Below, piece after piece: positions 1 to 45,787 of a stretch of 64,000 nt of DNA. The notes beneath the pieces were generated by a model. The model was not told the DNA's origin and ran no database searches. It was given only the letters and a program-made list of their open reading frames with translations. Numbering within the stretch: position 1 is the stretch's first letter; every line of letters starts with the position of its first letter. The stretch spans positions 1,550,001-1,614,000 of the forward strand of contig OX337228.1 in NCBI GenBank assembly GCA_946965045.2, given 5' to 3'. Origin of the DNA: Epithemia pelagica. Lineage: Eukaryota; Protista; Bacillariophyta. Made by a program: the position numbers and the translations under genes.

Positions 1-1406
1 TTGGCTGGCAATTCTCGCTGCTGCTGCAAGAGCGTGATGATAGTCTCGAGGGCCCGTGCTTGACCCGAGTCTCCACAGAGGGCACATTTTCCCTGGATAG
101 AAGCCGAAAGTGTTTGGGTGTTGTTGGACCGCCACCGTCGTGCCACTTCCAGTCCCAAACGGGTACTGACATAATGTTTCATCAGTGGATCCTGGGGATC
201 AATTCCGGTACCGGAGGGTGCACAATAGGTGGCACCCAACTCCATGAGAGCTTGATTGACATGTCCGGGTCGACTTTGATCGCCCGCCTCGACGAGTTGT
301 TGCGCCAAGTTCCATCCCAGCTTGTCCTTGAGCATGGGTGCCTTGACATCAATGGCAATGCCCCGCAAGCGGGCCAAGACCCGACACACATTGCCATCCA
401 CGACAGGGACCGTCACCTGGTAGGCAATGGAGGCAATCGCACTCGCTGTATACCGACCCACACCCGGCAATTGCAACAACCCCTCGACCGTCGTGGGCAA
501 TTGACCGTCCAAGGTTTGAACCACGGATTGAGCGGCTTGGTGCAAGAGTCGACCTCGGCGATAAAAGCCCAATCCGGCCCAATGCGCATTAATTTGTTCG
601 TCCGTGGCGGCGGCCAACTCCTGAATGGTTGGAAAGGAGTTCATCCACCGCACCCAATAGGGAATGACCGCTTCCACGCGTGTTTGTTGCAGCATGATTT
701 CACTCACCCAAATGCCATAGGCTGACACAGGGAAAGCAGTGGTAGTGGTCGTAGTTGTATCTGTTTTTTCGGTTTGTGATACTGACTGTGGACTGGACGT
801 TGATGCCCGTTTCTTCTTGTTGTTGTTGGTGGTGGGTGCAAAATAGTCTTGAATCGAGGACTGCTGCGCGGAGGATCGTTTGCCCATTGGTTTTGCCTCA
901 CTACTATTCTTCTTCTTCTTCTTCTTCTTCTTGTCGGCAAAATTGGCCGTACTGCCATCCCATGGAGGAGGATCGCCCCGCCATGGCAAGTGACGACGAT
1001 GCGCGTCGTACCAGTCCAACAAGCGTTGTCGAATCTCTGTCGCTTCCTCGGGGGAAAACAAATGAAAGTCGAAACTATCATGAGACAACCATTCATCCAG
1101 GAGCACCGAATCGTTTCGTTCTTCTTGTTGAGTCTTGGTACTGTCGGCCGTCAGTGATACTGAAACTGTGGTGTCGATCTCCTGCTCCTCCTCGGTCTTG
1201 ACCATGGTCATTCTTTGTCTTGTTCTGGGCCGCATCCTGCTGCTGGGTCCACCAGGACGGACAATGACGGTCGAAGAACCACAAATCCAACCAGCCGATG
1301 CAGCTCCAATCCAACGTCTCGGACTGGGCCACAACGACGACGACGGCGACGATGCCAACCACAAGCACGAGCTACCAATCCCCCCAATGCGAGACAGGAG
1401 GAGCAT
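1..1406 (-). CDS. MUTYH: A/G-specific adenine DNA glycosylase MutY, C-terminus runs off the window start
   Basis: Manual minus-strand translation, open from ATG 1406 to base 1: LLDWYDAHRRHLPWRGD...AYGIWVSEIMLQQTRV (catalytic Glu), WAGLGFYRR, HhH LPGVGRYTASAIASIA, VVDGNVCRV (catalytic Asp), NQALMELGATYC. The N-terminus (MLLLSRIGG..., Arg/Ser-rich) looks like an organellar presequence. ORF 60..725(+) is its antisense shadow. Confidence 0.95.
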   Translation of the reverse strand, partial: MLLLSRIGGIGSSCLWLASSPSSSLWPSPRRWIGAASAGWICGSSTVIVRPGGPSSRMRPRTRQRMTMVKTEEEQEIDTTVSVSLTADSTKTQQEERNDSVLLDEWLSHDSFDFHLFSPEEATEIRQRLLDWYDAHRRHLPWRGDPPPWDGSTANFADKKKKKKKKNSSEAKPMGKRSSAQQSSIQDYFAPTTNNNKKKRASTSSPQSVSQTEKTDTTTTTTTAFPVSAYGIWVSEIMLQQTRVEAVIPYWVRWMNSFPTIQELAAATDEQINAHWAGLGFYRRGRLLHQAAQSVVQTLDGQLPTTVEGLLQLPGVGRYTASAIASIAYQVTVPVVDGNVCRVLARLRGIAIDVKAPMLKDKLGWNLAQQLVEAGDQSRPGHVNQALMELGATYCAPSGTGIDPQDPLMKHYVSTRLGLEVARRWRSNNTQTLSASIQGKCALCGDSGQARALETIITLLQQQRELPA

Positions 1407-1739
1407 GGTCGTCTCCGCGACAGAAAAAATGAGACAGACAGCATTGGCAACGATTCTCCTCTAGCTAGAAGTTTTGAGACATCCAGTACCGGTAGTCTAC
1501 ATAGATATACGTATGTACCATCGATGTGTTACTCCTCAGCGATTGGGAGTCATGAGGATTAGTGATTCAAATTCTTTTTCACCTCCAATTTACGACAGAT
1601 GTGCGACCCAATGATTCGCTCCTGCTTGGGAGTAGCTATGTATGTACTGACATTAAGGCGACACTAAAGCGACCGCGGAGCCTTTTTTGCATCCGCGGCA
1701 AAAGTTTTTCATTTTCTGCGTGTGTGGTTGCTTTGGACC

Positions 1740-3144
1740 ATGTCGTCCAGTGACGAAACGTATTTGGAAGGCTTCATTGAGGGTCTTGCGACATTGCCCA
1801 ATGAAGTCCGACGAAATCTGGAATTGATGAAAGATCTCGACAAATCCTCGGGGTGAGTAAGAAGAAGTGAATCGTGAATCGCACATGCCACGGTCTGTAC
1901 AAATATGGCAATCTTGGGCTCTCACCCAATTGCTCTCACCAATGATTGTCGTGTTTGCTCAATGTTCTTCTATAGCTCCAAAGCGGATGAGTTACTCAAA
2001 CTGCAAGATCAATACCTCCAACATATACAACAAAAGCTGGCTCACACTCGTGTGGTTCAACGTCCCGACACGGGTGCCATTGTGGGTCTTGAGTTGATTC
2101 TGCCGGGACAACAAGAACAACAACAGTCTCCTCCGGAACATGCCTTTGTACCGACGGTCGATGAACTCTTTGAATATACCTACCATCCTCAGCTCTACAC
2201 GAGTATCGAACGATTGCAACACGAGTGTTTGCAAAAGGCCGAAGAAAAAATGGCGGTTGCGCAACAAACGCATGAATTGGTCGATGCGCAAGTTCAACGA
2301 TTGGATCGGGATTTGGCAGCCATGGAAGCCTTGTTACAGGTACGTCGTATCATTATTATTATTCTTGTGATTAGAGTTGTTGTTTTTTCATTGGAGCAAA
2401 CCTTTTTCGTGAGGCGAATGAGGACGAGGAGGATTCGCTCTCCTGCGCGTTTGTTTTTGCCGTTTGTGTGTATGTTTGTGTGTGTGTGTATGTTTATATA
2501 TATTCCTGAACGAGTTACCCTCTCCACCTTGCTGGATCTCACCACTTATATATATTCTTCCATGATGATCATGATACAAATATAATTAGGCCACGGGAGA
2601 CTTTGATTCCGGTGCCTTGGCCAAACCCAATGACTTGGCCGCCTGTCAAGTCTCACTGGGCAGTGAATGGATCTTGGCCAAGGTGTTGAGTCATGATCCC
2701 TCCACGGACATGTACCAATTGGCCGATGAAGATGTGGAAAGCAACAAGGGTACGTATTATGATTCTGATGATTCTTCTGTTGTCGTGGTATGATTCTGTA
2801 TCGTATGGTGGTAAAGTATTGGATTGTGAAAGGTTGGTCTTGGCTTGTCTCACAACACACACTCTCTCTACACGCGCTTCCGTCCTGTGCTGTTACATTC
2901 AGTCTTTCATTTGCCAGCTCCTCAAGTCAAGATACTGTATACCATTGAAAAATTGCGGTCGGGCGATGCCGTCTATGCCATTTATCCCGAAACCACCTCC
3001 TTTTATCAAGCCACGGTCGTGCAGGCACCTCGTCGACAACAGGGTGGTGCCATTGTCATGGTGAATTTTCACGACGATGCCGATGAGTTTGGTGTCACGC
3101 ATGACAAGGCGGTTCCCTTGAAACATGTCATGCCGCCACCCTAA
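1740..3144 (+). CDS. ING N-terminal coiled-coil fused to SGF29-type tandem Tudor domain (H3K4me reader), 4 exons
   Basis: Exons 1740-1852, 1976-2339, 2590-2749, 2903-3144; GT-AG junctions keep the frame. Exon 1 YLEGFIEGLATLPNEVRRNLELMKDLD resembles ING-N. Exons 3-4 EWILAKV...YQLADED...VYAIYPETTSFYQATV...VNFHDD resemble the SGF29 Tudor pair. Confidence 0.85.
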
Positions 3145-3461
3145 CAAAAGATGAAGGGAAGAAGAAGAAGGCAAGCACTTGCACAAGCACGAGTTTGTTG
3201 TGGGACATTGCTCAGACAGGTTGCTTTTTCTGGAGTAAACACATTGCTTTTGCGCAGAGCAAACACTTGCTTTTCGTGGAGCAAACTGTATCAGCCGAGT
3301 GCAAACGGAGTTGGAAGTGGAATGCTTGCTACGAGGTGGTCTCTCTTACTAGTAGGTAGTATGAGCTGTGTCAATGACGGCAATGGCGAGGAAGAACGCG
3401 AATATGCCACCTTGGAGCCACTTTCAGTCGGTCCTATAGGAATGGTATAGCTTTCTCGAAG

Positions 3462-4013
3462 CAAAATGTCATATCATCACACAAACAATAGCACTGCTTG
3501 TGTCTCTTGTGATTAGTCCGTTGCTCCCGCTATTACACGATATCTTATTGCATGGCCGTCACGTGTCGTTGCACCATGTCAGCGTCCGGGATCCTCTGAA
3601 ATGGTGGTAGTGGTGCCTTGTCTGGTTGTTGTTGCGCGTGTAATGATGACAATGGCAATGACTCGCTCTCCTCGGACGACAACAACTGATGGAGCAGGAA
3701 GAGTATCGAGCGATCCCAATTGGTCGTACGGTGCTGGGCCTTTTCCAGGTCCTCCTCCTCCGCTTCTTTGGTTTCTGCTGCTGTCATGCTTTGACGGTTG
3801 CGGGTCCGGATCCACTCGTTCGGATGGTGGTGGAGTTGGTGGCACATAGTCCACCAGTACCTTGACAGGCACCTTGACAATGGTTAATAAGACATTTGGA
3901 TTGGTGTTCGTGTTGCTCCAGTCGTTGGCTTACAACCTCAAAACCACTTTCGCTGGGGGGTATATGTTTGTCGTTTCAATGTGTCGCTTTGACTTCCGCT
4001 GGCACAGAGGTCC
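3462..4013 (-). pseudogene. Diverged, frameshifted, 5'-truncated copy of the 3' end of the 6510-8066 gene
   Basis: Colinear with 6427-6955 (shared start caaaatgtcatatcatcacacaaacaatagcac; homology ends at ttccgctggcacagaggtcc). VPVKVLVDYVPPTPPPSERVDP and WDRSILFLLHQLL fall in different frames (ORFs 3579..3872 and 3545..3880). Confidence 0.85.
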
Positions 4014-4108
4014 ACATCCACAGGTCCACAGCACTTTTTATACTACAGTAAGAACTTTTTGTACCGCCGGGAAGTAGTCACGTGCGGGTCGCGCGGTTTC
4101 CCTCTCCT

Positions 4109-4152
4109 GTGTGACACTGGTGTGACACTTGCGTGACACTTGTGTGACACTT
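4109..4152. repeat. Four tandem 11-bp repeats, consensus GTGTGACACTT
   Basis: gtgtgacactg / gtgtgacactt / gcgtgacactt / gtgtgacactt read directly from the sequence. Confidence 0.95.
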
Positions 4153-4294
4153 CTTCCAGGAAGACACAGTAAGTTTCTAAAAACTCCATACCAGACTGTG
4201 TAGGTAGTTCGTCTCACATTTTTATTATTGCAGACAAATCGAAAGTTCGATGACGGTTGAAGACTTTGCAGATTGTGGACGCCTCTTATGACTT

Positions 4295-5896
4295 ATGATA
4301 GATGAGATCATGTCCTCTCCACTAATACTATCCAACATGACAATCATTGATCCCTCCAAGTTGTTTCCAGACCGGTCGTTTCCCGCGAATGGAGAAACAC
4401 TGGATCTTTCTCCACTCAAGAATCTCGTGGCGAGTGGCGCCGAATTCTTCCTTCCTCGGCAACTCTATGTGCGGCAGGAAATGCGTCAACTCTTCCAAGA
4501 ACTGACAGAAATTCCAGTCCTCACCAAGATTGTATCTGGCTCGCCTGGAATCGGGAAATCGGTGACCTGCTTCCTCACCGCGCTGTACCGCGCTTGGAAT
4601 GGCAAGAAGAGTGTCTTCTTCTTTCGTTGGACAAAAAATTCGAATGAACGTGCCAGTGCATTTTTGATATGCAAGAACGATGCGGGATCTCTTCAGATCC
4701 AGTTCGCTCGCGATATTCTGAAAAATAGAGGGCCACAAGAGACATACAACAGTCTTCTGCAAGAGCTTCCGGATACTCGGGATGTGTACAATATGGTAGA
4801 CGGACTACTCGTCACGGAGGTGGAGTTTGTGACAGAACTCGACACTCTCTGTACATCTGGAAGAGGAGACAAAATTACAAGTGAAAAGAGCATTGGACCA
4901 ATCCCCGATTGGGAAGAAATTGAGGAAGAGAGACAACGCAAAGTTCGCCTCCAGAGTACGGCCAATATTGTCATGGGTGCTTGGCAAGTGGATGACATGA
5001 AGTGTGCAATCACAGCTTGCTGTGTTGGTAATGATGAGAGATTTGATGAGGAGTTATTCGAGGAAATATATTATGTTACGGGGGGTCGGATTCGTGAAGC
5101 TGTCTCCATGTACAGGAAAAAGGAGGTGAGCACCATTTATGCCGATAATGTTGTCAAGAGAGTCTCCGTAGTAGCTTCAGCAAAATTGGCACTAGCTCGA
5201 ACAGATCAAAGATCTACGTCGGATCACGTAGACGCCCTACGTTCAATATTCCGTAGACCAATGCAAGGTGATGTCTGGGATGAAGTTGACATTATTGTTG
5301 ATAGTCAATACATGATACACAAACTACATGAGAAGGTTGATGGAGAGGAACTACTGAACTCATATCACTCTGCGAGAGATTGTGGGTATTACAAGGCAGC
5401 CGCTGACTACTTTGAAGAACTTATGCATTGGCAGCTTTCTCAGCCAGGCGTATTCCCTTCCATTTCCGACTCCTTAAAGGGACAAGGAACGGCTTCCGAA
5501 GGTGTCCAGATGCTCAAGACGACGAATTGTTATTGGATGCCCAGCACTCCGAACTTTGTCAATATTGACGCCGCTATAGTGCGACCAGACATGCACGTGT
5601 GGTGTTTTCAATACACAACAGGACAAAGTCACACCTACAAGAAGAGACGCCTCCGTCCTAAGTTTCTCAATGTTCTCAACCAATCTTTTGTACAGCAGGT
5701 CCAGGATGTTACAGTTATCTTTGTGGTCCCAACTGGCACAACGTTTTCGACTCCAGATACTGGTGGAGAATGTAATACAAAAGTGGTGACTGTTGATTGC
5801 GAAAACATGGACGTGTTGCGTGCAAGCTTGACAAATTTGATTGAAACCGTGGCAACCACTGCAAGCGTAGCGACTTCCCAAGCAAAAACCACTTGA
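4295..5896 (+). CDS. Crinkler/RHS (CR)-type P-loop NTPase + C-terminal restriction-endonuclease-fold protein
   Basis: LYVR, Walker A GSPGIGKS (4538-4561), Walker B-like YNMVDG, LCTS, MGAW, YYVTGGRIR, then YFEELMH...YWMPSTPNFVNIDAAIV...WCFQYT...SH, the motif order of CR NTPase+REase proteins. A canonical 5'-UTR intron is predicted at 4169-4233 (GTAAGT...TTATTGCAG). Confidence 0.8.
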   Translation: MIDEIMSSPLILSNMTIIDPSKLFPDRSFPANGETLDLSPLKNLVASGAEFFLPRQLYVRQEMRQLFQELTEIPVLTKIVSGSPGIGKSVTCFLTALYRAWNGKKSVFFFRWTKNSNERASAFLICKNDAGSLQIQFARDILKNRGPQETYNSLLQELPDTRDVYNMVDGLLVTEVEFVTELDTLCTSGRGDKITSEKSIGPIPDWEEIEEERQRKVRLQSTANIVMGAWQVDDMKCAITACCVGNDERFDEELFEEIYYVTGGRIREAVSMYRKKEVSTIYADNVVKRVSVVASAKLALARTDQRSTSDHVDALRSIFRRPMQGDVWDEVDIIVDSQYMIHKLHEKVDGEELLNSYHSARDCGYYKAAADYFEELMHWQLSQPGVFPSISDSLKGQGTASEGVQMLKTTNCYWMPSTPNFVNIDAAIVRPDMHVWCFQYTTGQSHTYKKRRLRPKFLNVLNQSFVQQVQDVTVIFVVPTGTTFSTPDTGGECNTKVVTVDCENMDVLRASLTNLIETVATTASVATSQAKTT

Positions 5897-5924
5897 ACCA
5901 TTGCATCCACGGTGAACCGTTGAG

Positions 5925-6346
5925 CTAGTCACAATTGCGTCGTGCTTTGGGTCCATTGTCATACCAACCTTTCATGAGTTCCACTTTTTTGCTTCCGAAA
6001 TTGACATTGGTCGTCAACAACAAGGATGGATCTCCCGGCAATTTGCAAAAGGGATGAACAGGAAGAGAAGACTCCTCGTTCGTGGTCCTCGTTGAACCCG
6101 CCGGGTCCAGAATCGTAGTGTCATCGTGATCCTCATCATCATCATCCCTGTTTGGCGAGGAGGAGGCCTGGAGGAGCGAGGAGGACATGGTATTCGATTG
6201 CGCCGCTGTAGTACAACGAGACCCTAGATGCTGGACAATGTTGGACGAATGGGAGAAAAGCACTCCACCAAATCAGTCCACAAGAAGAAGAAGGATACGA
6301 CAACAACAAGAAGAAGAAACGAACGGCAAGGATTGAGACGACTCAT
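5925..6346 (-). pseudogene. Plastid-targeted MIF/tautomerase-like gene, exon 1 only, with a 1-nt frameshift
   Basis: Signal peptide MSRLNPCRSFLLLVVVVSFFFLWTDLVEC-F, then a -1 shift near 6255 into KLPGDPSLLLTTNVNFGSKKVELMK (MIF-like P-x-L-x-x-x-TNV start), then a GTTGGT donor near 5978. No MIF-like exon 2 was found downstream. Confidence 0.6.
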
Positions 6347-6509
6347 AGAGAAGGGCGGCAACCAGCAGAACGCCATGGAGAGAACAACCAGGAACGATGC
6401 TACCATATGGTATTGCGTTCTCGAATCAAAATGTCATATCATCACACAAACAATAGCACTGCTTGTGTCTCTTGTGATTAGTCCGTTGCTACCGCTATTT
6501 CACGATATC

Positions 6510-8066
6510 TTATTGCATGGCCGTCATGAGTCGTTGTACCATGTCAGCGTCCTCCGGGATCCTCTGAAATGGTGGTAGTGGTGCCTTGTCTGGTTGTCGC
6601 TGTTCTTGTGATGATGACAACTCGCTCCCCTCAGACGACACCAACAACTGATGGAGCAGGGAGAGTATCGTGCGATCCCAATTGGTCGTATGGTTCTTGA
6701 CCTTTTCCAAGTCCTCCTCCTCCTCCTCCGCTTCTTCTTTGGTTTCTTCCGGATCGACTCGTTCGGATGGTGGTGGAGTTGGTGGCACGTAGTCCACCAG
6801 TACCTTGACAGGCACCTTGACAATGGTTAATAAGACATTAGGATTGGTGTTCGTGTTGCTCCAGTCGTTGGCAGTTGTCTGGTCGTCGTCGTCGTTTGTC
6901 GTTTCATTGTGTACAGATGTGTCGTGGACCAATCGTTCCGCTGGCACAGAGGTCCGCCGTTTTGCGGTGTTGTTGTTGTTGTTGTCTGCTGGTTCGGGTG
7001 CAAGACGACTATGGACCAATCCCACGGCCTTGCGAGTCCGACTGCGGTCCGCAGCATCATCCATGTCCAGGCTTCCGGGTAGTAGATAAAGAGACCCCAC
7101 CGTCCAGGGCAAGGTGGGTCGTGCTTGTTCTTCCGTTTGACTGCCAATAATCATGGCACTGCTGGTCGAACTGGTTCCCAAGGATTGCAACACATGATGC
7201 GGCGGCAACTGTCTCACCCAAATCAATCGATGCGAGGCGGATCCATATTCACACAATGGTTCGGCATGGAGGGGCAATGTCCAGTGCCATACCGAGACTT
7301 GGCCCTGTCGTTTGTACAAGATTCGTTCTTGTGTCGGACGACGAGGAATCGTGGGAGCAAACGCCTGCCATTGTTGTTGAACTTGTTCTTGAATTTGTTG
7401 ATTATTTCTATGTTCTTGTACAGCACGGGCAATGGAATCCGGCAATCGGGAAGAGGGTGGAGCACCTTCGTCGCAACACTCACAGAATCCCCCTCCTTGT
7501 CCTCCTCCTCCCATAAAGGCAAAGGTCATGGACGACAAAAAATCCATGGTGGTATCCATATTGGTTTCCGGAAACGTTTGGCTCATGAGTTCTGCCACGG
7601 TGGGTGTTTCATCCTCTTCGTCGTTTGGATTCTTGGTATTCATGGTTTCAGCTGCAGTACCAGCAGTAGAAGTATCGTTTGGTTTGATCCGTTTGGCGGG
7701 TGGAGGTGCCTCCTCCTCCGCATTCGTTGGGGGTTCCAACATGGTTGGATCCCCCCACGAAAACTCGGACAAGGTCTCTTGCAAGAGTCGTCGTTCTTCT
7801 TGCGCCGCTCGTTCGGCATTTCTCCTCATGGTACTTGTTGTTGTCGTGGTGGTAACAAGGTCGGTGCCACGACTGGTGTTGTCACCTATGAATGTTGTTG
7901 TTGTTGTGGTTGGCAGTAGTGTCTCCAATGGCACGGCTGCATTATCTGTAACGGAGGATGATGATGCATTACTGAGAAACAGCGACGACGATGAGGGTAT
8001 TGTAGGAGGAGCCTGTTCCTCCCATGCTGCCGTTCCATCTGTGGTGATATGGACCGCGTCGTTCAT
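6510..8066 (-). CDS. Hypothetical protein (518 aa), low-complexity linkers around a globular-looking core
   Basis: Long ORF with the Thr/Gln/acidic bias of other genes here; its 3' part is conserved in the paralogous fragment at 3462-4013. No family recognised. Confidence 0.7.
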   Translation of the reverse strand: MNDAVHITTDGTAAWEEQAPPTIPSSSSLFLSNASSSSVTDNAAVPLETLLPTTTTTTFIGDNTSRGTDLVTTTTTTSTMRRNAERAAQEERRLLQETLSEFSWGDPTMLEPPTNAEEEAPPPAKRIKPNDTSTAGTAAETMNTKNPNDEEDETPTVAELMSQTFPETNMDTTMDFLSSMTFAFMGGGGQGGGFCECCDEGAPPSSRLPDSIARAVQEHRNNQQIQEQVQQQWQAFAPTIPRRPTQERILYKRQGQVSVWHWTLPLHAEPLCEYGSASHRLIWVRQLPPHHVLQSLGTSSTSSAMIIGSQTEEQARPTLPWTVGSLYLLPGSLDMDDAADRSRTRKAVGLVHSRLAPEPADNNNNNTAKRRTSVPAERLVHDTSVHNETTNDDDDQTTANDWSNTNTNPNVLLTIVKVPVKVLVDYVPPTPPPSERVDPEETKEEAEEEEEDLEKVKNHTTNWDRTILSLLHQLLVSSEGSELSSSQEQRQPDKAPLPPFQRIPEDADMVQRLMTAMQ

Positions 8067-8182
8067 GGTGGATGTGATGGGGTTTTTTTTTCAAACCAAA
8101 AATTTGGGGGAGGGTGACGCAATCAAAACCCGAACACAAAAGCGACATAAAAGCGACTGAAAGCACGACACGAGAAGTCGGC

Positions 8183-8200
8183 GGCAATCTTGACGCCATA
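8183..8200. repeat. Left target-site duplication GGCAATCTTGACGCCATA
   Basis: Exact 18-bp match to 11373-11390. Confidence 0.95.
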
Positions 8201-11200
8201 GACGGCCAAGTTAAAGTTCGAATCTACATGATTGGGTTTGTCGACGACACAAGCGGCAGTGTCAATGACTTTCTGCTTCCAGAACCAGCGCCTCCCTCCC
8301 ATTACATTACTCGCGCTACTCATGACGCTCAGCGCTGGAGCAACGTACTCTCCCTTTCAGGGGGGGGACTTCAGAAGACCAAGTGTTCCTATCATTTCAT
8401 GTTCTACAAATTTACTATTGACGGCTTGCCAGTTCTACAAGGGGGCGAGTTTGGACCAAAGATCGAAATCGAGTTTGAATCTGGAGATTCCCTTCGTTCA
8501 TTAAAGCAACTTTCGGCTTTTTCAAGTCACAAGACCTTGGGTGTTCACAAAGCTCCCAGCTCCACCAATAAAGGCTTGTTCGAATCTCTAAAGAAGAAAA
8601 ACACGCAACACACTGCCATTATGCATCGCAGTCCGTTCTCACCTACGGATGCATGGGCATATTATCACTCGATCTACCTCCCGAGTATTTGTTACCCATT
8701 TCCGTCATCCACTCTCTCGAAACAACACTGTCTGAAACTACAAAGAGAGTTTAAAGTTGCGTTCCTCCCTAAATTCGGAATGAATCGATGCACCTACAAT
8801 GCTGTGGTATATGGTGCTGCGGATTATGGAGGCCTTGCTCTTCGGGATCTGTCAGTTGAATGCGGTATTGCTCAAGTGTATATGTTCCTCGCAACCATTC
8901 GACCTTGTTGAGTCGCTTCAGACCTTGCAACCATAATGCTATCGTGGGGCCAATTCTTGGCCGGAACTAGCAAACCAATACTCATGGACCTACAGCGACG
9001 GCTGCCACACATGGACCCGATGCAATGGTTACCTGCTATGCGAAATTTTCTTCAGTCGGTAAACTGTCAAATTGAGGTTGGCCTGGATTTTGTACCCCGA
9101 CTTCAACGAGAAAATGACCTGTTCATTATGGATCACGCCACTGCATCTCCTTTTACTGACGGAGAACTTAAATTGATTAATGCGTGCCGAATCTACCTTG
9201 GAGCAACGGTTCTTAGTGATATCACAACTCCTGATGGCACAACCTTCAATAAACACTGCTTGCAAGGTCAACGATCCCCATATTCCACTGCTAAAGGACT
9301 TGTTCCTTACCAAGAACGACCAGGCCCAAGAGCATGGCAGCTCTGGCGGCGCTTTCTGAAGACTTTAACCGTTGCACAATCAAAAGCACTTCTTGCCTCA
9401 CCCCTTGGCTTGTGGACAGTTACTGGAAACGATACCCTCCGACAATGGCATGCATATTTCTCACCGAGTCATACTCTACTGTATGTACTGGAGAATGATG
9501 GTTATCATGTCTATGCCCCCACAATGCTTCGCCGGTTCATCAGTACTGGACAGATTACACCTATATTGCCTCCTCACTCCGTTCCAGCCTTCACAAGGGC
9601 TGAACCGTTAGGTTTCCGGGCTTTGTTTTCCTGGTCACATGCAAGTCCACCTGTTATTTCTCCCGCTCCAACGACTCTACAACAACATCAAGAACGATTG
9701 CCTAAATGGGAGCGTGATTTGCTCAAAGGTATCACCTTTATTGCAACCCCTGATACTGTGCTCCAATGTTTGCAATCTACTGGCCCTGCTACCATCATCC
9801 CAATACATCTCTGCAGTGATGGATCTGCTCCGCTGTTCCGTGGCTCGTTTGGCTGTATTTGCGCTACAGATACCGGTGTTGAACTCTTTTCTCTTGCTGG
9901 ACCTGCCCCAGGCTTTCGAACCTCGTCCTTTCGTGCAGAAAGTTATGGATTACTTTCGCTACTTCAGTTCCTTTTTCGGTTTTGCGAGTATCATGGGATT
10001 TCGCTTCCCCCGAATTTATACCTCTATACTGACTCTAACAGCGCTATCCAAACAATTCACAAAAGACTTGGTTGGGTGCATGACTTTCCATATACGACTA
10101 TGTCTCCAGACTGGGATCTACACCAAGCTATTACAACCGCACTTCGACGGTTCCCGAGCCTCCCTACTTGCCAACATGTTCGCGGTCACCAAGATTCACA
10201 GGCACAAGTTTCAACCCTCTCCCTCCCAGCTCAATTGAATGTCCGTGCCGATTTCTTAGCCTCTCAGTACACCTATCCAGAGGACGTTTCTTCTACACAC
10301 GCTCCCCTTGTTACTGGCGCGATGGCTATCCTTCATGGACCGAATGGCACCATCAATTCGAACTACAGGCAGGTATTACGACGACTTGCATCTGATCCTG
10401 AGATGACCAAATACCTTTGCAGTCGCAATGACTGGAGTCTATCAACCTTTGACTCAATTTCGTGGACGGCTCATGCCAGTGCCCTTCGAGGCCAGTTTCC
10501 CCGTCGTCAGTTCTTTGCGAAGTATCTTCATGACTGGCTCCCATTAGGCGACAAACGTTCTCTGTACGCCGATCACTACCCCTCTACATGTCCTAAGTGC
10601 GAACAAGATATTTTGGAAACACGGGAACATTTTCTCCGGTGTCCTGGTCGCAAATGGATCGGTTCTCTCCTTGACGATCTCCAAACCTATTGTAGTACTC
10701 ACTTCGTTGATCCTGTTCTCCAGAATCTACTACGACAACTTCTCTTATCGTGGATTGCCGGTACTCCCCCTCAGATCTCCTCCCTCTCTCCTGGTTATTC
10801 TGTCCTCCTCGCCCGCCAGTCTACTGTGGGCATACAACACCTCTTCTACGGACGATTCGTGACTGATTGGATAGCACTGCAAGACGCTCATCTACTACAA
10901 TGTCCCCCCACGGAGAAAGGGCATTTTCATGGCTCTATGTTCGTTACAACCTGCATCAAGATCATCTGGGAACACGTCTACCGTCTCTGGTTATCTCGGA
11001 ACCAAGATTTACATGGACACGACAACTCTACCCGGGAATCCGCCGCTTTGGCCCAAGCTCAACGCGAAGTTCAGTGCCTGTACAGATTGCGTCATTCTGT
11101 TGATCCACGTGATCGCATTCTCTTTTACTCAACTCCGGAGGAACACTTTACTACTCATACGACTTCGGCCAGCTTACGCTCGTGGATTGATACTTGGCAA

Positions 11201-11372
11201 CCTGTCATCCTCAAGTCTGTGCGCTCATCCCGCTATTGACCTAGTGTCAGTAGCTTTTCCCTTTGTTAGTCCTCGCGTGTGTAATCGCCACACATGCCGG
11301 GCGCGTCGGTCGGCGTTTCCCCTGAGTGGGTACGTGCGGCAGCGTTATAATAGATTCAATTTTTTTTTTTTT
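8201..11372 (+). mobile_element. 5'-truncated non-LTR retrotransposon (RT + RNase H + CCHC; Ambal-like diatom LINE)
   Basis: RT motif FVDD (8237-8248), DAQRW, HKTLGV; RNase H CSDGS...SSFRAESYG...YTDS...HVRGHQD...LNVRADFLA; CPKC...ETREHFLRC zinc knuckle. One in-frame TGA at 8909-8911 splits the ORF (8114..8911 and 8936..11239 share a frame). T13 tail at 11360-11372; flanked by an 18-bp direct repeat. Confidence 0.93.
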
Positions 11373-23841: not shown

Positions 23842-26800
23842 TCATGACTTGGCGGCGGCTGCGGCGGCAGTGTTTTTCAAGGGAAGGGGAGGCAATTCCA
23901 CAATGGTCCCACCGGATGTAGTTTGGTTCGCCGCCGCCGACGACGCAGAGACGACGGAGCGTTTGGATTCCGCTGGAGAGGCCATATCGGGTGCAGCTTC
24001 ATCGGGGGATAGTAATTTGACATTCAATACAGCAGGCAATTCATGCGTCCGCGAAACGGCGGATGGTCGAATGGAATTGGTGGGGGAACTCACCCTAGTT
24101 TTGTTATTGTCGTTGTCGTCATGGTTGTCCGGATCATTGTCAAAATGGGGCGACAATTCCGACACATCAAACCCTTGCCAGGTGGGATACACAAAGGGAT
24201 TGGGTGCAGGATCTGGATAGAGTAATACGTCGTTGCTGGGGTTTGACTTTGGATCGTCGTCGTTGGACTGCTCCGCTTTTCGACTGGTTTGGGCAATCGT
24301 TTGCAGCAATCGTTTTCGTAACTGTATACTAGTGGCAGAAGAAGATGTGTCCTTTGTTTCTGGCTGGAGGGAAATCTGAACAAGGGTGTAGACGACGGCA
24401 AGATAAAGGAAACAAGCAAGAATACCACAGTTAGAAACTGTTTTCGATTACCAAACCAAAAGATTCTTTGAAAACGTACCAAAAAGGAATCGATCGATTG
24501 TAGAGGACCCTTCAATCCAGGGGGGTTGTCTTCTGCAGGTGCTGCGGCTGAGGGTGTTGCCGCGTACGGACCAAAGAGTTTTTCAAATGACATTTTCGTA
24601 AGTTTTAGTACAAGCGTACTTTCAATGTGAACGACGGGCGGTGGGACGGGTGCTGTTGCTTCGCTGGCCTGAGTGGCCGAAGCCGAATCAAAGTCTCCAA
24701 AGTTGCTATCGTCATTGTCGTTGTTGGAGGCAGGTTGTTCGGGAGCGGAATCAAAGTCACCAAAATCATCATCATCATCTTCCTTGTCTTGAGCAACTTC
24801 TACGGCATCCTTGTTCGATGTTGTATGAGCGGGTTCTTTGGGTGGTTCCGGCGCCGAATCAAAGTCTCCAAAGTCGTCATCATCATCGTCGTCGTCCACG
24901 CCCTGTTTGGATTGATCCACCACAGCTGACGAAGTCTCACTGTTGTTGATGGGAGCAGAATCAAAGTCACCAAAGTCGTCATCATCTTGGTCATTGACGG
25001 ATGGGGCGGTTGTCGCACTCGTTGGTTCTGTGCCATTTGGTGGAGCCGCATCTTCAAAATCTCCAAAGGCGTCCGAAACTTGCTTCGTTTCCTCAATTGG
25101 TCCGTTTGGTATCTCATTGCCGTTTGCCTCCATTCTGGTTGCCTTCTTCGTTTCGGGAGCCGCCGCCGAGTCAAAGTCCTGCGCAGCGTCCTCCTCCATG
25201 GTTGTCGGGTTCGTCATCGTCTCCTGCACCTCAGCGGCAGAGGATCCACCATCCGCAAAGGCTCCAAACTCGTCCTCATGGTCGTCGTCGTCGGTCGCTT
25301 CGTTTGGTCGCGCGACGTTGGAACCGTTGGATGACAGGGTCGGCGCGCCCGCGGCGGACGACGTTCCGTTCACCATAGTTTCGTTTTGTTGTTCCTCTTT
25401 CAAGGGTGCCGCAGATCCAAACGCTCCAAAGTCATCCTCCTCGTCCTCGTCCTCGTTTGTCGTAGTAACGCCCTTACTAGGATCCAATGGCTGGCTTACG
25501 GGGAGAGTTCCAGTGCCATCCTTTTCCGGGGAAGGAATGAAAATCCCCGAATTATCCGTGGTCGTGGTCATTGGAAGAGCCGAATCAAAGGCACCAAATC
25601 CATCGTCGTTCTCATCTTGGACAGCCTTGGGATCTAATGTCAGTCCCTCCTCTTTCGTCGTGGTGGTAGAACCAGGAGCCGCCGAACCAAACTCTCCAAA
25701 ATCAAGTTCGGTCGATACTGGATCGCCAGGGGGATACGATTCCGTATTGGAGGTACCAAGAGCCGGATCCACAACACCACCGCCTGTAGTAGTATCAATG
25801 GGCTGCGGATTGGCCGGAGCCGATCCAAAGTCACCAAAATCGTCGTCCTCGTCATCCACGGCAGTAGTGACTGGGCCCTCCTCTCCATCCGGAGGAGTGG
25901 ATGCAAACCCTCCAAAGTCATTGGTTGCTGCAGTAGTGGGAACCGGCTCGGAATCGGTGACAGGTGCCGAACCAAAATCACCAAAGTCGTCGTCGTCGTC
26001 CTTGGAGGGACTCAATTCGACCGCACCCGAAATTCCAAAATCCAAATCATCACTGGCCGTTTCCGGCTCGTCATGGGCCATGGGTGGTGGTTGTGCGGCC
26101 GAGTCAAAGGCCCCAAAATCATCATCATCATCATCGTCGTCGTCCGTCTTGGTCTCTGGTGGCGCAAGATGTGTCGCGTCGACGGGTTCCGCCATTGTAT
26201 CCATGTCGCCATGTTCCATGGCACTCGGCTGCGTTTGCGGAGTCTGTTCCTCGGCTGCTGGCAGCGCCACCGAATCAAACTCTCCAAAGCCGTCATGATT
26301 GCTGTCCTTGACTGCTTGTGCATCGGGCTTTGGTTCCTCGGTAGCAGTCGTGCTTGTTAGTGCAGCGGAATCAAAGTCCCCAAAGTCATTGTCATCGACA
26401 CTGGCACTGTCTTGAGTTTGTGCTGGTGGCTGTTCAGGACTGGTTGCGGGAACCCCTCCAAATGTATCGAGGCCCGTTGTTGGTGCTGGCAGAACAGAGT
26501 CAAAGGTTCCAAAGTCATTCATGTCCATCGTACTGGGTTTCGTCTCCACTACCGGTTCCTGGTTGGCCGTGGGTTGCACCGCCGAATCAAAGGCTCCAAA
26601 GTCCTCCTCCGAACCATTGGCTTCCGCAACCTCCTTGTTGGCTGCGGTGGCTAACGTCGAACCAAAGGCTCCAAAGTCATCGTCGTCGTTGGAACCAGTA
26701 TTTTTTGGTTCTGCCATGGACAACGGTTCCTCGTTGGTGCTGGCAGGTTGCACAGCGGAATCAAACGCTCCAAACTGGTCGTCGTCATCATTCGACACTG

Positions 26801-28433
26801 TGGATTGGGGTTCTGGTACGACGACTGGATTGCTCAAAGCAGCGCTGGTTGTTGGTTGTGCCGCCGCGGAATCAAACTCTCCAAAGCCGTCATCATCGTC
26901 ATCATCCGACACTGTACTGCTGGGTTGTGGCGCTGCCTCTTGTGCGATGACGGTGGATGCTGGGACGGCCGAATCAAACTCTCCAAAGTCGTCGTCGTCG
27001 TCAGTTGCATTGCTCGGGACGGGTGGGCTGTCATTGGCTTCCACAGTAGTGTTAGCAGTCAGCCCACCAAGGGATGGCAAGGGAAGTTCACGAGGTGTAT
27101 CATCCAAATGGGCAAAGGGGTCATCATAATCATGGTTGTTGGGTGCCGAAAATCCACCACCAACTTGTTCTTGTGCTACTTTTTCGAATTCCATGGGAGG
27201 TGTTGTAGCGTTCATGTCCACATTGTTGTTCTCCAGGGCATGGTCCTGCTCGACCTGGGTGCCGTTTTGCGTCGTAGTGGTAGCAGGTTCGGGAGAGGTG
27301 GAGCCGGCAAAATCGCCAAACTCATCATCATCGTCCTGATCATGATTGATGATTTCCTGTTGCGGATTGTTCGTTGTGTCTGAGATTGTGTGGTTTTGCA
27401 GTGTCGGTGCTATATTCTTGTCCTCGTGCTGTTGCGGCGGATCGGGTTCCCCGTCTGGACTCGTCGCAACAGGAGTGGTCTTCGCCTCTGTGCCAGTGGC
27501 TGGTATCCAATCCCCATGGGTGGTAGGCATGGTCGCCAAGTGTGGTGGTGCCGATTCGGCCCCATCGTGATCGGCGTGGACAAAGTCACCAAAGTCATCC
27601 GTGTCGTCTTGGTCATCTTGATTTGTTGTGGGCAACTGCGGGGGTGCGGTTTCGGCTCCGTCCTCGTGATTGGCATGACAAAAGTCCCCAAAATCATCAT
27701 CGTCATCGTCGTCGTCATTCGCATCATTCGGAATGTTGTTGTTGTTGTTGTTGTTTTCGATTGGAGAATCCTTCTCCTGGCTGTCCTGCATGAGGGTCAT
27801 GGGAACCACTGGTGTCCAATCGGTTTGTGCCGGTTCCAATCCAGCAAAGGCATCGTCATCGTCGTCACCCTTGTCATCCTCTTGGTGGTCGTCGTCGACC
27901 GACAAGGTACTGAGGACCGATGGACGCGATTCGAATGGACGACCACCACCACCATGGGGTGGTGGTTGTTGTTGTTGTTGCTGTTGAGCCGTGGCCAGTT
28001 CGACGGAAGAGGTGGATACCGTCATCAAACTGGGATCCAAGGTGACGGCACTGACCATACTCAATTGCCGGGTGGCCGACGACGAGTGACTAATTTGTGT
28101 GGGTGGATGATTGTTTGTCGGAATCTCCACGACTACAGGAGCACCACCATTGTGGGTATTGTTGTGGTTGGTGTTGTAATGTTCTTGCTGTGAGACAATG
28201 GCCACATCGGTCCCCATGGCTGTAGGGGTGGCCATGGTTGTGGTTTGTTGTTGTTGTTGTTGTTCCGGTGTAAGTGGCTGCTGCTGCAGCTGGATTTGTG
28301 GCTGAGGCGGTAATTGCAACTGTGCTTGCTGCTGCAGTTGCATTTGTGAATGTGGTTGCTGGGGCCACTGTTGTGGATACAATGATGGTTGTGGTGGCTG
28401 CTGTTGCGTCTGCTGCAATGGTTGCGAAAAAGG

Positions 28434-28473
<40 letters not shown>

Positions 28474-29240
28474 GGCGGTGGGAAATTTTGCTGTTGTTGT
28501 TGTTGAAAGTTTTGCTGCTGCTGTTGTGGATAAAAGGGTTGTTGCTGTTGTTGTTGTGGATAAAACGCTTGCTGCTGCTGCTGTGGATAAAACGCTTGTT
28601 GTTGTTGTTGTGGATAGAAGGACTGCGCCTGTTGTTGTTGTTGTTGTTGTTGTTGTGGATAAAACGACTGTTGTTGTTGTTGTTGTGGACTATAAAATGG
28701 TCGCTGCTGTTGTGGATACCCTTGTTGTAGTTGTTGCTGTTGCTGAAAGGGCTGCTGCTCTTGTGTAGGTGGAGCACTTGGTGCGGGTGAGGCATCTTCA
28801 AAGTCTCCAAAGTCGTCGTCATCGTCGTCATCTTGGTTCGTTGGTTGTGTGGGTCCTTGTGGAAGAGCTTGCGAGGGTGCCAAACTGCTGACCGCACTGG
28901 CAAAGTCCCCAAAGGTATCGTCGTCGTTGTTTCCATTCTTGTTTTGGGACAATGGAGGTGCAGTCATCATCGTCGGTGGAGGTTGGTCATTGCTCAATCC
29001 AGCAAAGGGATCGGCGTAGGCTGCTGCCGTGTTGGTACCAAACCCATTCATGGTGTTGTCGTCGTCTTCTAGGTAGATGGTTGCAAAGTGTCTTGGTCTG
29101 TGGAATGGCCTTTCCTCTCTTGCATCAATGGCGGTGTGATCTGGTGCGCGGTATGGTCTTTGGGGGTCTCGTGTCCCGTTTTTAGAGTGAAGTTGAAAGG
29201 GGGCGAACTGAATCTTCTCCTCAAACGTTAAGCGATCCAT
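23842..29240 (-). CDS. Very large acidic disordered protein with about 26 FGxF motifs (aftiphilin/gamma-synergin-like AP-1 accessory candidate) and a polyQ tract
   Basis: ORF 24090..29345 plus a terminal exon; intron 24376-24479 (GTACGT...TTCAG) is in frame with ORF 23842..24309. Repeated DDDFG(D/E/A)FDSA. Start uncertain (ATG 29240 or 29051). Confidence 0.8.
28250..28750 (-). repeat. CAA/CAG microsatellite tracts with repeated Qn-(A/S/P)FYP units (coding)
   Basis: Plus strand (gtt)n and repeated tgtggataaaacgcttg units; encodes QQQQAFYPQQQQ repeats. Confidence 0.9.
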
Positions 29241-29420
29241 AAGCGACCAAGGGAAAAAGGGATCTTTGGTGCCAGAATCATTTTTTTTCGACGAATTCTT
29301 TTTTCGCTCGGTTCGACACATTGCAACTTGCAACAGCAAAAGCAAACAAGAGAATCAGAATCTTTCCTCCTCGATTGTGTGTATATCCGTCTCCCTCTCA
29401 CCATCACCACCATTGGAACA

Positions 29421-38069: not shown

Positions 38070-41000
38070 TTACACGTCGATGTCATCTTCAAAATCCCAG
38101 CCGCTATCGTCGCTATCAACGTCAGCTAGACCGTCATTCATGTTCATGGGGGAAGAATTCTTTGGTCCATCGTTGTCCATTCCTGCTGGGCCCCGTGTAG
38201 AAGACGTCCTGGATGATTGTGATCCTGGATGTATTCCAGCTACCTTCCGGGGGAGAGAGCCCGCGAACAATGGTTTGGGCGTCTTCCCGGTGATGGGGAG
38301 AGCTTCCGTGGGTCCTTGATTTGTTATCCCGGCTACCTGAACACTGGATAGCGTTCCCGTAGCTTGTTTCTCCCATGATCCCTTCAAAACGGCTTCTTTG
38401 TCAATAGATGTAACTCTTGCTTCGTTCGGAGCTTTGGAATCCGTCGCAGACACGGATTCATTTCCGGTTTTGACAGATGTGGGTGCATCAGCACGGGCCC
38501 GAACAAGATATGCCCGGCCCTGTTCAATCAATCTCCGTCTTTCGCTTTTCTGTGGACTGTCACCACCTTTGGTTTTGTGTAAGAATTGTTGTCCACGCTG
38601 CCGGAACGAATTTCTCTCAGCGGGTGACAACTTTATAGGAGAAACCCTTTTCAAGGTCTCTGAAATGGAGCTTCCAAGATATTTACCCACAAGACTCTCT
38701 CCATTTCCCCCGTATGCTACAAGCGGCCCATCATCCTCTTCTAAATGTGTCATAGGAGGGTCACGACGAGTTGAGGTTGACGATTTTACTGGAGAAGGCT
38801 TATCTTGTGCACTTTGACTGGTTTGCGAGGTCAAAGTAGTCTGGGGCTGGTTTTCCGCATATGGTTCTCCTGCACCATTTTCCTTCTCTTCATCAACTCG
38901 CCCAAAGTCGGTGGAAATAGGGTGAGGACGGCGTCCTCCAGGACGCTTCGGTTTCTCTGACCTTTCACCTCTAGGAATAGATATGACTTGGGCTGATTGC
39001 TGGTTGAGCGTTGTGTGTTTGTCATCCTTTTCTGAGACTTCATGGTGGGGGCGACGGCCAGCACGACGATTGCTTCGCGTGGACGTCTGCTCAGGGCCGC
39101 GCTGCGGGGCACTGTGGGAATTCTCGTCGTTGGGTCCCAATTCTTCCGATTCATTTGAGTGGCCGTGAACATGCCGAATGGCTCCTCTCGCAACAGCAAG
39201 CTGAGTACTGTCTGCAGTGTCGACGCGTACCAAACCTCTGTGGGATCCATCATCAGACTGTTTACAATGTGGCGACTGCTGCTCCTCTATGTAGTGAGAT
39301 TGATGCACGGTATTGAGGGGGGCACCTCTTGCAACCGCAAGTTCCGTACTGTCGGCTGTGTCAACACGTTTCAAACCTCGATGGGGTTCAGGAGAAGTAT
39401 GATTGGCACCTTCAATGCTTGTTCCAATGACCGGGTGCTCTGGACCTAGATGTGGCCGATGAATATCCAGTTGGACGGATTCAGTCTGGTGGATGGCATG
39501 GCGGGGTGTGCCTCGCGCAATCGCAAGCTCTGTGCTGTCCATCGTATCAACACGAACTACACCTCTCGGAGGAACGTCTTTCCCCTGGTGCTGAGGGTGC
39601 TGAGTTATGGGGTTCTCTGCAGCTGTGTGTGCAACGAGAGGCCTTTCACGACGATGAGTGCCTCTCATGGCGGCAATTTCTGTGCTATCACTTGTTTCCA
39701 GACGCATCAAGCCTCTCGGTGAAACCATTCGAAAAACATCTGTCACCTTTTCCCCCCTCATTCCTTTACGGGGAATGTCACCATCAAGGTCAGTTTCCAC
39801 ATTAGTATTGTTCATGACGTGCTGATGATTGCTATGAAGTGTGAAGTCGCTCGTATCAACTTGAACTGGCGCGACACCATTCTTAAGAAGCTTATGAAAC
39901 AAATTCAAATTTGACAAAGGAGTCTTCTTTTTTGGCTTCTTCAAAATAACGATTGGATCATTGAAGTCGGGTTCCGACGCATGCTTCACGGCCCAGAGAA
40001 GTGCTTCGTTGAAACTTGCATTGGGGCAATTGGTCGCCGCGCGAACAGATGCATTTCTGCTATATCCACGCTGCTGCAAACGATTCACAATATCTTCATC
40101 GACACGGTCCACTTGTTGTTGGTCAGGATCATCATTATTCTGTAATTCAGGTTCAATAATCTTGAGCATCTCATTTATTACACTCTTCCGTGTATCTTCA
40201 TTGCCTATTTGCATCATAAGCGAGAGGCAGAACCGTCCAAGAGAAGACAGTTCGTCGTCTCTAACCGATGACATGGCATCCGAATCGAGTGCTCCAGACG
40301 CGTAAATTGAAACAATATAACGAGAGATTGATACCAACAAATCATCATCCAGTCTATTTTCACCTCCATGCCGAGATAAAGCGTCCAAGAGCTTCACGAT
40401 GTCGACAGAATGGTGCGAAAGAATGCTGTTTCGAAGCGACCGAAGCTCGGACTCTCTGTCCACAGATAGAAAGGAGCTATATTCAGTCGAGGCCCAGGCA
40501 TCGAAGATTTGTTCATACTCGCGCGATATCTTAACTGAACCCTCCTTCCAAGGAAACGAGAGCACTATACCGCAGAGCTCTCTCTTTGTAGTGAAATCCT
40601 CATAGTCGCTACAGCGTACAATTGACGAGATTTCATGGACAACGGTCTTTTCTGAAGCCACGTCCTTATTGTTGGACCACATAAGGTCACTCAGAAGCAG
40701 ATTTCTACAGAGTGCGGCGCTTGCACCGTGAAATCCGGCCTTTGATGCATGCGCTGCCACCCTGCATTTCACAGCCACAACTTCTTTCTCATGCACCAGA
40801 CCAAGAAATTCGGCCAACTGAAATACTGCTTGGCCTGGAAGTCGGGGCAGGTGTGAATTATCTTCACCTCGATTCGCTTGGTTTTCGTGTTCGTCCATGG
40901 TTATCTCACGGATGGCATTGTTCAGAATCGCTGCCGACAGAGGATCAGCCCACTCATCACTTTCAAAAACCACGCTTTCAGGACAATCATTGAGCAAAAG

Positions 41001-45413: not shown

Positions 45414-45787
45414 GGAGCGAGGATCTCTAGAGCAACAGGACAACAACAAAACAAGAAGAAAAAGACTGAAAGTGTTGTGATGTCTTTGTGGGTCGATCCT
45501 GAAAGAAAGAGGGGCCAAATGTTGATCGCCAATACAGATTTTGGGGGCATAGGTTTGAAGCTGGGTAGTATCTTTGAATGGATCCAAAAGTACAACTATG
45601 ACCCAAAGAGAGCCATGCCGCACAGTGACGTGAGCATTCATCGAACGAGAACTATTCAGCGCTTGGAATTTACCGCTCTTCATTATGAATTTACTTCCGA
45701 CCAATGAGCACACGCTAAAGTTTCGGGAGACCACCACCGTAACAACGGCACCACACCATCCGTCACTTCGCCACCACCACCATGATC

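Follow-up and report, generated by a model that had tools for sequence, protein, structure and literature searches.

Research on toxin modules of the Crinkler-RHS type (CR) has dealt mostly with oomycetes and fungi, which inject them into hosts as weapons. The commonest CR toxin architecture joins a nucleoside triphosphatase (NTPase), a helix-turn-helix (HTH) region and a restriction endonuclease (REase) domain (PMC5289972, PMC12957317). The N-terminal headers of CR proteins are diverse, and the modules themselves have been proposed to derive from transposons (PMC5289972). Homologues are also reported from free-living eukaryotes; the lineages listed are chlorophytes, land plants, amoebozoans and animals, and do not include diatoms (PMC5289972, PMC12957317). 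Here we analyse a gene for a protein of 533 amino acids (aa) at positions 4295-5896 of a 64,000-nucleotide stretch of DNA from the diatom Epithemia pelagica (assembly GCA_946965045.2, contig OX337228.1, positions 1,550,001 to 1,614,000 of the forward strand), which we call the window. A first-pass annotation, made from the letters of the window alone, had described it as a headerless Crinkler-type NTPase and REase gene behaving like a mobile cassette. We find support for homology between the whole length of this protein and the toxin module of a header-bearing CR protein, and we find nothing to show that the gene moves by itself.

A Crinkler-type module without a header

The gene is one uninterrupted, single-exon open reading frame (ORF) on the plus strand, its coordinates taking in the stop codon, and the protein is encoded once within the window. 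A TGA at 4289-4291 shuts the frame upstream; both the intact, intronless ORF and this closure had been noted in the first pass, and both were confirmed. Comparison with the closest relative, P0002 (68% identity in protein, 74% in DNA), gave a dN/dS of 0.24, and we conclude from the sequence comparison that the ORF is a real gene under purifying selection.

A word search returned 18 relatives of the protein at 37-68% identity, the named ones being proteins from metagenome-assembled genomes (MAGs) of Bacillariaceae. An exhaustive profile search with no restriction on length recovered 493 representative clusters at the E<=1e-3 threshold; 287 of these reach E<=1e-10 and 108 reach E<=1e-30. Members are 98-903 aa long, and almost none of them is named or annotated. 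The named members of the family belong to raphid pennate diatoms. One of them, from Stauroneis constricta, is an MMETSP transcriptome-derived peptide, which indicates transcription of at least one member in a diatom. A pattern scan found no relatives in IMG/VR. When the window protein and the family profiles were compared with Pfam, NCBIfam, PADLOC and PDB sequences, only sub-threshold P-loop matches were obtained.

The relationship to CR proteins emerged from profile A4, built on diverse members of the family, which retrieves P0166, a 585-aa protein of Diversispora epigaea (Glove_174g112), at E 3.8e-11. Residues 5-107 of P0166 match the Pfam Crinkler effector N-terminal domain PF20147 (E 2.7e-18). 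Its residues 149-542 align with the family profile in hhalign over 360 columns, with a probability of 97.9% and E 5.7e-13. Within this alignment the Walker A and Walker B motifs correspond, as do GG..R ("GG.PR" in P0166), FE...H ("FE..SH"), NF..ID ("NF.SIDA"), FQ.T ("FQIT") and F.VP ("F.VLP"). Pairwise tblastn of P0166 against the window gave E 1.2e-5, and protein identity is about 18-27%. These alignments support homology of the window protein, over its length, to the NTPase, helical and REase-type module of P0166, and the assignment to a CR-type NTPase and REase module made in the first pass is upheld. The protein family is unannotated, but a module of this kind has already been described for CR proteins, including those of free-living eukaryotes (PMC5289972, PMC12957317).

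The header that marks CR effectors is missing: none of the Pfam header families matches the window protein, even at E<=10. All 18 closest relatives likewise begin within about 50 residues of the NTPase. In place of the header and linker of P0166 there are about 30-48 residues in the window protein, and the profile aligns only after the header. Residues 1-55 are too short for a ubiquitin-like header (about 106 aa) and match none. As far as the headers in Pfam are concerned, the description of the protein as headerless is supported, for the close relatives as well as for the window protein.

Some longer members of the family do have an N-terminal extension. A conserved domain of about 115 aa stands directly before the module in 12 of 31 longer relatives (alignment A6: P0040, P0044, P0055, P0067, P0070, P0071, P0089, P0093, P0109, P0120, P0134 and P0149). 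Pfam has no match for this domain, a possible undescribed header; the hhalign comparison leaves only about 30 residues of the window protein opposite it.

Domain organisation of the protein

The features of the protein, all on the plus strand, are as follows; column conservation was counted over 34 diverse family members (profile A4), and structural statements refer to AlphaFold2 (AF2) models with their predicted local distance difference test scores (pLDDT).

4295-4459 (+), N-terminal segment, residues 1-55, predicted to pack on the NTPase (pLDDT 72-90)
4460-4987 (+), predicted P-loop NTPase core, residues 56-231 (column conservation, Foldseek, weak Pfam matches)
4538-4561 (+), Walker A, residues 82-89 (conserved columns)
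4787-4804 (+), Walker B-type hydrophobic strand ending in D169-G170 (conserved columns)
4988-5170 (+), four-helix lid-like bundle, residues 232-292 (helices modelled at 232-289)
5081-5095 (+), G263-G264-x-(I/V)-R267 motif in the lid (conserved columns)
5171-5305 (+), conserved, poorly modelled segment, residues 293-337 (pLDDT 32-58)
5306-5869 (+), helical region and REase-like alpha/beta domain, residues 338-525 (AF2 models, column counts)
5414-5428 (+), E374 and H378 in the first core helix (model, conservation)
5552-5575 (+), D425 ("NIDAA" motif) at the start of the second strand (model, conservation)
5609-5617 (+), Q439-x-T441 in the third strand, followed by H446 (model, conservation)

Walker A has the form GxxxxGK[ST], and the hydrophobic Walker B strand ends in Asp, as in AAA+/STAND-like NTPases of the ASCE type. 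G82, G85, G87 and S89 are present in 34/34 members, K88 in 29/34 and D169 in 32/34; sensor-1-like residues T187/S188 follow the Walker B strand. The AF2 model of the whole protein has a pLDDT of 74.8 and a predicted template modelling score (pTM) of 0.61. Searched with Foldseek, this full model matched RFC, Rad17/Rad24, mS29 and CED-4 at E 7e-6 to 5e-4 with probability 1.0, the TM-scores being low (0.2-0.4) for this multi-domain query. Because of these matches we take the N-terminal half, as modelled, to be an AAA+/STAND-like NTPase with a helical lid. Sequence profiles gave a match to mS29 at E 0.02, and family members showed weak Pfam matches to nSTAND, AAA_16 and NPHP3_N, all of them below gathering scores.

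The alignment of the 18 closest relatives has an invariant G-G-R-I-R; it also contains a Walker A, a D-G after a hydrophobic strand and conserved C-terminal motifs. Across the wider family, G263 and G264 are found in 34/34 members and R267 in 33/34, with R265 in only 12/34. In other words, the Walker motifs and the GGRIR motif listed in the first pass are all present (residues 82-89, D169-G170 and 263-267), and within the last of these only G263, G264 and R267 hold family-wide. That motif had been likened to an arginine finger; we infer that its arginine is instead of the AAA+ sensor-2 type and does not act in trans. The lone acidic Walker B residue, D169, followed by Gly, suggests a switch rather than a motor. 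Between the lid and the C-terminal domain, in the poorly modelled segment, D313, R316, F319, R320, D336 and S337 are invariant among close relatives.

For the C-terminal domain we obtained the canonical REase core order, alpha-beta-beta-beta-alpha-beta, in two AF2 models: that of the whole protein and that of the domain alone (pLDDT 89.8), in which the first core helix was not included. The residues predicted to surround the active site are conserved to differing degrees (E374 in 33/34 members, H378 and Q439 each in 32/34, D425 in 27/34 and H446 in 24/34).

Genomic setting of the gene

The family has at least five loci in assembly ERZ21939226, on different contigs: the window copy, two intact copies and two broken ones. 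Protein identity to the window copy is 25-48% over the five-locus set and 25-27% for the two intact copies, P0038 and P0043. The broken copies belong to another subfamily; one is full-length but interrupted, the other fragmentary and rearranged. Some loci of the family adjoin copia-type (reverse-transcriptase) genes and others stand among ordinary genes. A single-copy orthologue in conserved synteny, which would have spoken against the first-pass view, was not found: at least five loci are dispersed in one genome, and the closest relative of the window gene sits in an unrelated neighbourhood. The other outcome named in the first pass as refuting, a lack of the REase fold, did not arise either, the C-terminal model being REase-like. 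The pattern, as far as sequence allows us to judge, is that of an old, dispersed and fast-diverging family that gains and loses copies. As a side observation, the broken paralogue on ctg1327l (L004) lies between two copia-type RVT_2 genes, with a 1300-aa gene nearby that has a faint hAT dimerisation match and a faint HhH-GPD gene at the edge of the locus; an HhH-GPD gene also lies 5' of the window locus.

The surroundings of the window gene contain the following features.

1963-3144 (+), ING-like and SGF29-Tudor gene, the intact upstream neighbour (Pfam SGF29_Tudor E 1.9e-12; gene calls; stop at 3144)
3442-4013 (-), decayed copy of part of the gene at 6510-8066, covering its final ~120 codons and its 3' flank (86% identical along 494 bp, with more blocks as far as 4013)
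4108-4152 (+), 11-bp unit in four tandem copies, ~145 bp 5' of the start codon (Tandem Repeats Finder score 76)
4169-4233 (+), candidate 65-nt spliceosomal intron in the 5' leader, GTAAGT ... CAG (consensus match only)
4250-4291 (+), 13-codon upstream ORF whose end is 3 nt from the main ATG (read from the sequence)
5925-6263 (-), small ORF separating the gene from the parent repeat copy, 112 aa long and called as 87 aa (ORF list, gene calls)
6407-6955 (-), parent copy of the duplicate, continuous with the intact gene body (self-comparison of the window)
6510-8066 (-), intact low-complexity host gene, an ORF of 518 aa, 410 aa as called in the public record (ORF list, gene calls)

The first-pass annotation had placed the gene at a site of deletion damage, with both neighbours truncated at its edges. 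A truncated piece does exist at 3442-4013, and it is a duplicate of the 3' end of the downstream gene; the true flanking genes, the SGF29-Tudor gene and the gene at 6510-8066, are intact. The duplicate and its parent at 6407-6955 represent a segment of about 570 bp, separated by several indels and about 13% divergence. Reading from left to right, the locus consists of a repeat, then 2.4 kb holding the ORF, then a repeat that runs into the gene at 6510-8066. This repeat evidence indicates a local duplication, which is a better description of the site than deletion damage. An old 2.4-kb insertion with a long target duplication and a templated patch copied from 2.4 kb away fit the layout equally well. 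The gene at 6510-8066 has one named relative only, from the diatom Epithemia clementina. For the small ORF at 5925-6263 on the minus strand there was no Pfam match, and truncation could not be demonstrated; a suspected likeness to the N-terminus of a MIF/tautomerase protein had no Pfam support and was dropped.

In the leader of the gene, the 13-codon upstream ORF is what the first-pass annotation had reported as an open frame further upstream, and it could restrict translation of the main ORF. The 11-bp tandem repeat may be a promoter-proximal element. It was not found at any other family locus compared, and its 8-bp core occurs once more in the window, at 51490.

The GC content of the ORF and the GC content at third codon positions (GC3) are both 0.463, within or near the range of the other long ORFs of the window, and in this sense are host-like. 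Its sequence complexity is no higher than that of most long ORFs in the window, and the strong low complexity in its surroundings is a property of the two immediate neighbours only. The earlier statement that the gene lacks the low-complexity bias of host genes is thus accurate relative to those two neighbours and fails for most other long ORFs, which are equally complex.

Two contigs of one assembly encode the window protein: the source contig of 787 kb and a haplotig of 24.5 kb (ctg888l). The gene is at the same site in both, so that both haplotypes are occupied. We counted haplotig divergence in 500-bp sliding windows, comparing positions 1-6919 of the window with ctg888l. Divergence is 4-7% per 500 bp left of about position 1800 and <=0.4% to the right of it, as far as the short contig reaches; this contig terminates inside the parent repeat copy. 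The low-divergence block begins at about 1800-2300, some 2 kb before the gene and independent of the gene's edges. The haplotigs also differ by one 73-bp indel near 4004. A homing-like signature was considered on the basis of a megablast break near 4008 between the haplotigs and was rejected: the break is the 73-bp indel, and the block of low divergence does not start there.

Other features of the window were recorded in passing. A 23-bp tandem repeat of 2.9 copies (3221-3286) lies just 3' of the stop codon of the SGF29-like gene. Just past the gene at 6510-8066 there are two consecutive long ORFs of 265 and 767 aa (8114-11239, plus strand), neither with a Pfam match; the 767-aa ORF looks RNase-H-like by eye, and the pair may be the remnant of a retroelement-like insertion. 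Two very long ORFs are found elsewhere on the minus strand, one of 1751 aa (24090-29345) and one of 2555 aa (38070-45737).

Interpretation and relation to known systems

On balance we lean towards the explanation that the ORF is a resident, functional diatom gene encoding a cell-autonomous, headerless relative of the CR module, an NTP-switched effector of REase fold with a probable role in genetic conflict. In such a protein the AAA+/STAND-like P-loop NTPase would serve as a nucleotide-dependent switch, because a single acidic Walker B residue is followed by a conserved lid arginine. The switch would gate binding or cleavage of nucleic acid by the C-terminal REase-fold domain. The protein has no N-terminal delivery header. 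Its action would take place within the diatom cell that makes it, the probable opponents being viruses, transposons or parasites. A bolder version, which we offer tentatively and consider unlikely, would make the large headerless diatom CR family a set of executors of cell-autonomous immunity or cell death, each an NTP switch joined to a Q-x-T REase fold and directed against viruses, transposons or intracellular parasites, with header-bearing kin as the exported form.

Several observations weigh against our preferred explanation. The position of the canonical (D/E)xK lysine is occupied by Thr in 30/34 members, for which reason nuclease activity of the modelled domain is only plausible, and D425 is replaced in 7/34. 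The family thus has a variant of the strict E...D...(D/E/Q)-x-K catalytic pattern of PD-(D/E)xK nucleases. Foldseek gave no significant match for the C-terminal model, the best being at E 0.13 in PDB and 0.023 in BFVD. The top ranks, non-significant as they are, consist mostly of PD-(D/E)xK nucleases: N.BspD6I, NucS/EndoMS, DdmD, McrC, Can2, EcoO109I, MspJI, Shedu and FokI in PDB, and Mrr- and RecB-type proteins in BFVD. PDB contained no sequence relatives of the protein or its family, none of the PADLOC defence models matched the family, and no conserved partner gene, such as an immunity gene, was present beside family copies across the loci compared. The link to CR proteins itself runs through one header-bearing protein, P0166, among the matches listed. 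Of the REase-like core proposed in the first pass (FEE...IDA...FQ.T...H), the REase-like topology of the C-terminal model is retained, with E374, D425 and Q439 where they were expected; a significant structural match and the canonical lysine are not.

The substitutions at these two positions favour a reading in which the REase-like domain is a catalytically dead scaffold and the protein an NTP-dependent switch that binds nucleic acid or protein in a regulatory or housekeeping role. The lack of a partner or immunity gene conserved beside any copy agrees with that reading, as does the coexistence in one genome of intact copies under purifying selection. Known REase-fold enzymes, however, tolerate substitutes for the lysine, for example in sites of the BamHI and BglII type. 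In addition, E374, H378, Q439 and H446 are strongly conserved at the active-site positions of the fold, and the header-bearing P0166 has the same Q-x-T pattern; we consider a dead scaffold unlikely. Alternatively, the protein could be a toxin exported against competitors, grazers or parasites by a route independent of the known header. The ~115-aa domain shared by about 12/31 longer relatives, as a possible undescribed header, would suit this idea, as would the diversity of CR headers (PMC5289972). Neither the window protein nor its 17 closest relatives have that domain, the aligned region begins after only about 30 residues, and the N-terminus, judged by eye only, is not hydrophobic or signal-like. 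Export therefore appears very unlikely to us.

The explanation nearest to the first-pass view is that of a selfish mobile cassette, either cargo or engine, which inserted between two host genes and damaged them. The ORF does lie between two copies of ~570 bp (3442-4013 and 6407-6955), as an insertion with a long target duplication would leave. The unrelated neighbourhood of the closest relative, the copia-type reverse-transcriptase genes adjoining several family loci, the broken copies in the family and the proposed transposon origin of CR modules (PMC5289972) can all be cited in its favour. However, homology between family loci stops at the coding sequence, no flank is shared among nine loci, and no common upstream motif was found. 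We found no terminal inverted repeats and no short target duplications bounding the 2.4-kb segment, and this unit holds no transposase, integrase or reverse transcriptase. The only flanking repeat, the 570-bp host-gene duplicate, occurs at the window locus alone, where it fits a small templated patch from 2.4 kb away too. Since the same-genome copies, over the five loci found, are only 25-48% identical, none of them near-identical, they give no sign of recent copying, and since the copies of the flanking repeat are ~13% diverged, the duplication event is old. The host genes on either side are intact. The gene is on both haplotigs, and the block of near-identity starts ~2 kb upstream, not at the gene's edges. 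When we looked for an empty site, we found both haplotigs occupied, and the only relative of the flanking gene found outside this genome, in Epithemia, shares no neighbours and is too distant for synteny. Nothing, then, shows that the gene moves by itself; it reveals no new kind of mobile element, the claim that it behaves like a mobile cassette is not supported, and we regard the cassette as quite improbable. Still less credible, to the point that we give it hardly any weight, is a foreign origin of the gene, either by contamination or by very recent transfer from a parasitic oomycete or fungus. Its one attraction is that the only named CR relative among the matches listed is fungal, and that protein is only ~26% identical. 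Among named relatives, those closest to the window protein are Bacillariaceae MAG proteins and a transcript from Stauroneis, the GC and GC3 are host-like, and the gene has ordinary eukaryotic genes around it on a 787-kb contig and is present on the haplotig too.

A resident, cell-autonomous effector, the explanation we prefer, would have consequences beyond this locus. A well-conserved, expanded and header-free module in major marine primary producers suggests an internal role, for example in genome defence, cell death or conflict with transposons, and antiviral and antiparasite immunity in diatoms is almost unknown. Diatom genomes and marine metagenomes hold hundreds of "hypothetical proteins" that now gain a family.

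The best structural matches of the N-terminal half, RFC, Rad17/Rad24, mS29/DAP3 and CED-4, have in common with it a P-loop core and a helical lid with a conserved arginine. The window protein differs from the AAA+ clamp-loader/initiator clade and the STAND NTPases in its fused nuclease-fold domain, in having D-G instead of an acidic pair after the Walker B strand, and in lacking significant membership in any sequence family, its Pfam matches being below gathering scores. Coupling of an NTPase to a nuclease of REase fold is likewise seen in McrB/McrC, Tn7 TnsC/TnsA, DdmD and Shedu, and for the C-terminal domain McrC, DdmD and Shedu rank near the top of the fold search, below significance. In contrast to these prokaryotic pairs of NTPase and PD-(D/E)xK nuclease, the window protein is a single polypeptide, is eukaryotic and matches no PADLOC model.

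The described systems nearest in kind are eukaryotic. The AACRNL proteins, header-degenerate Crinkler-like proteins of free-living eukaryotes (PMC12957317), likewise keep a CR toxin module in non-pathogens after loss of the targeting domain, and have transposon-rich surroundings, as does the window family. They carry an ADP-ribosyltransferase module, whereas the window protein has NTPase and REase modules, and they have been amplified with flanking hAT elements, for which no counterpart is shown in the window family. With CR effectors of the NTPase, HTH and REase kind, exemplified by P0166, the homology extends to the whole module in the same domain order, at an identity of only ~18-27%. These effectors differ in having a header (PF20147 in P0166), while the window protein is headerless and comes from a photosynthetic diatom, not from a pathogen or symbiont. 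What is new here is the form: a module known in kind that lacks a header, is expanded in diatoms and shows a variant pattern at the active site.

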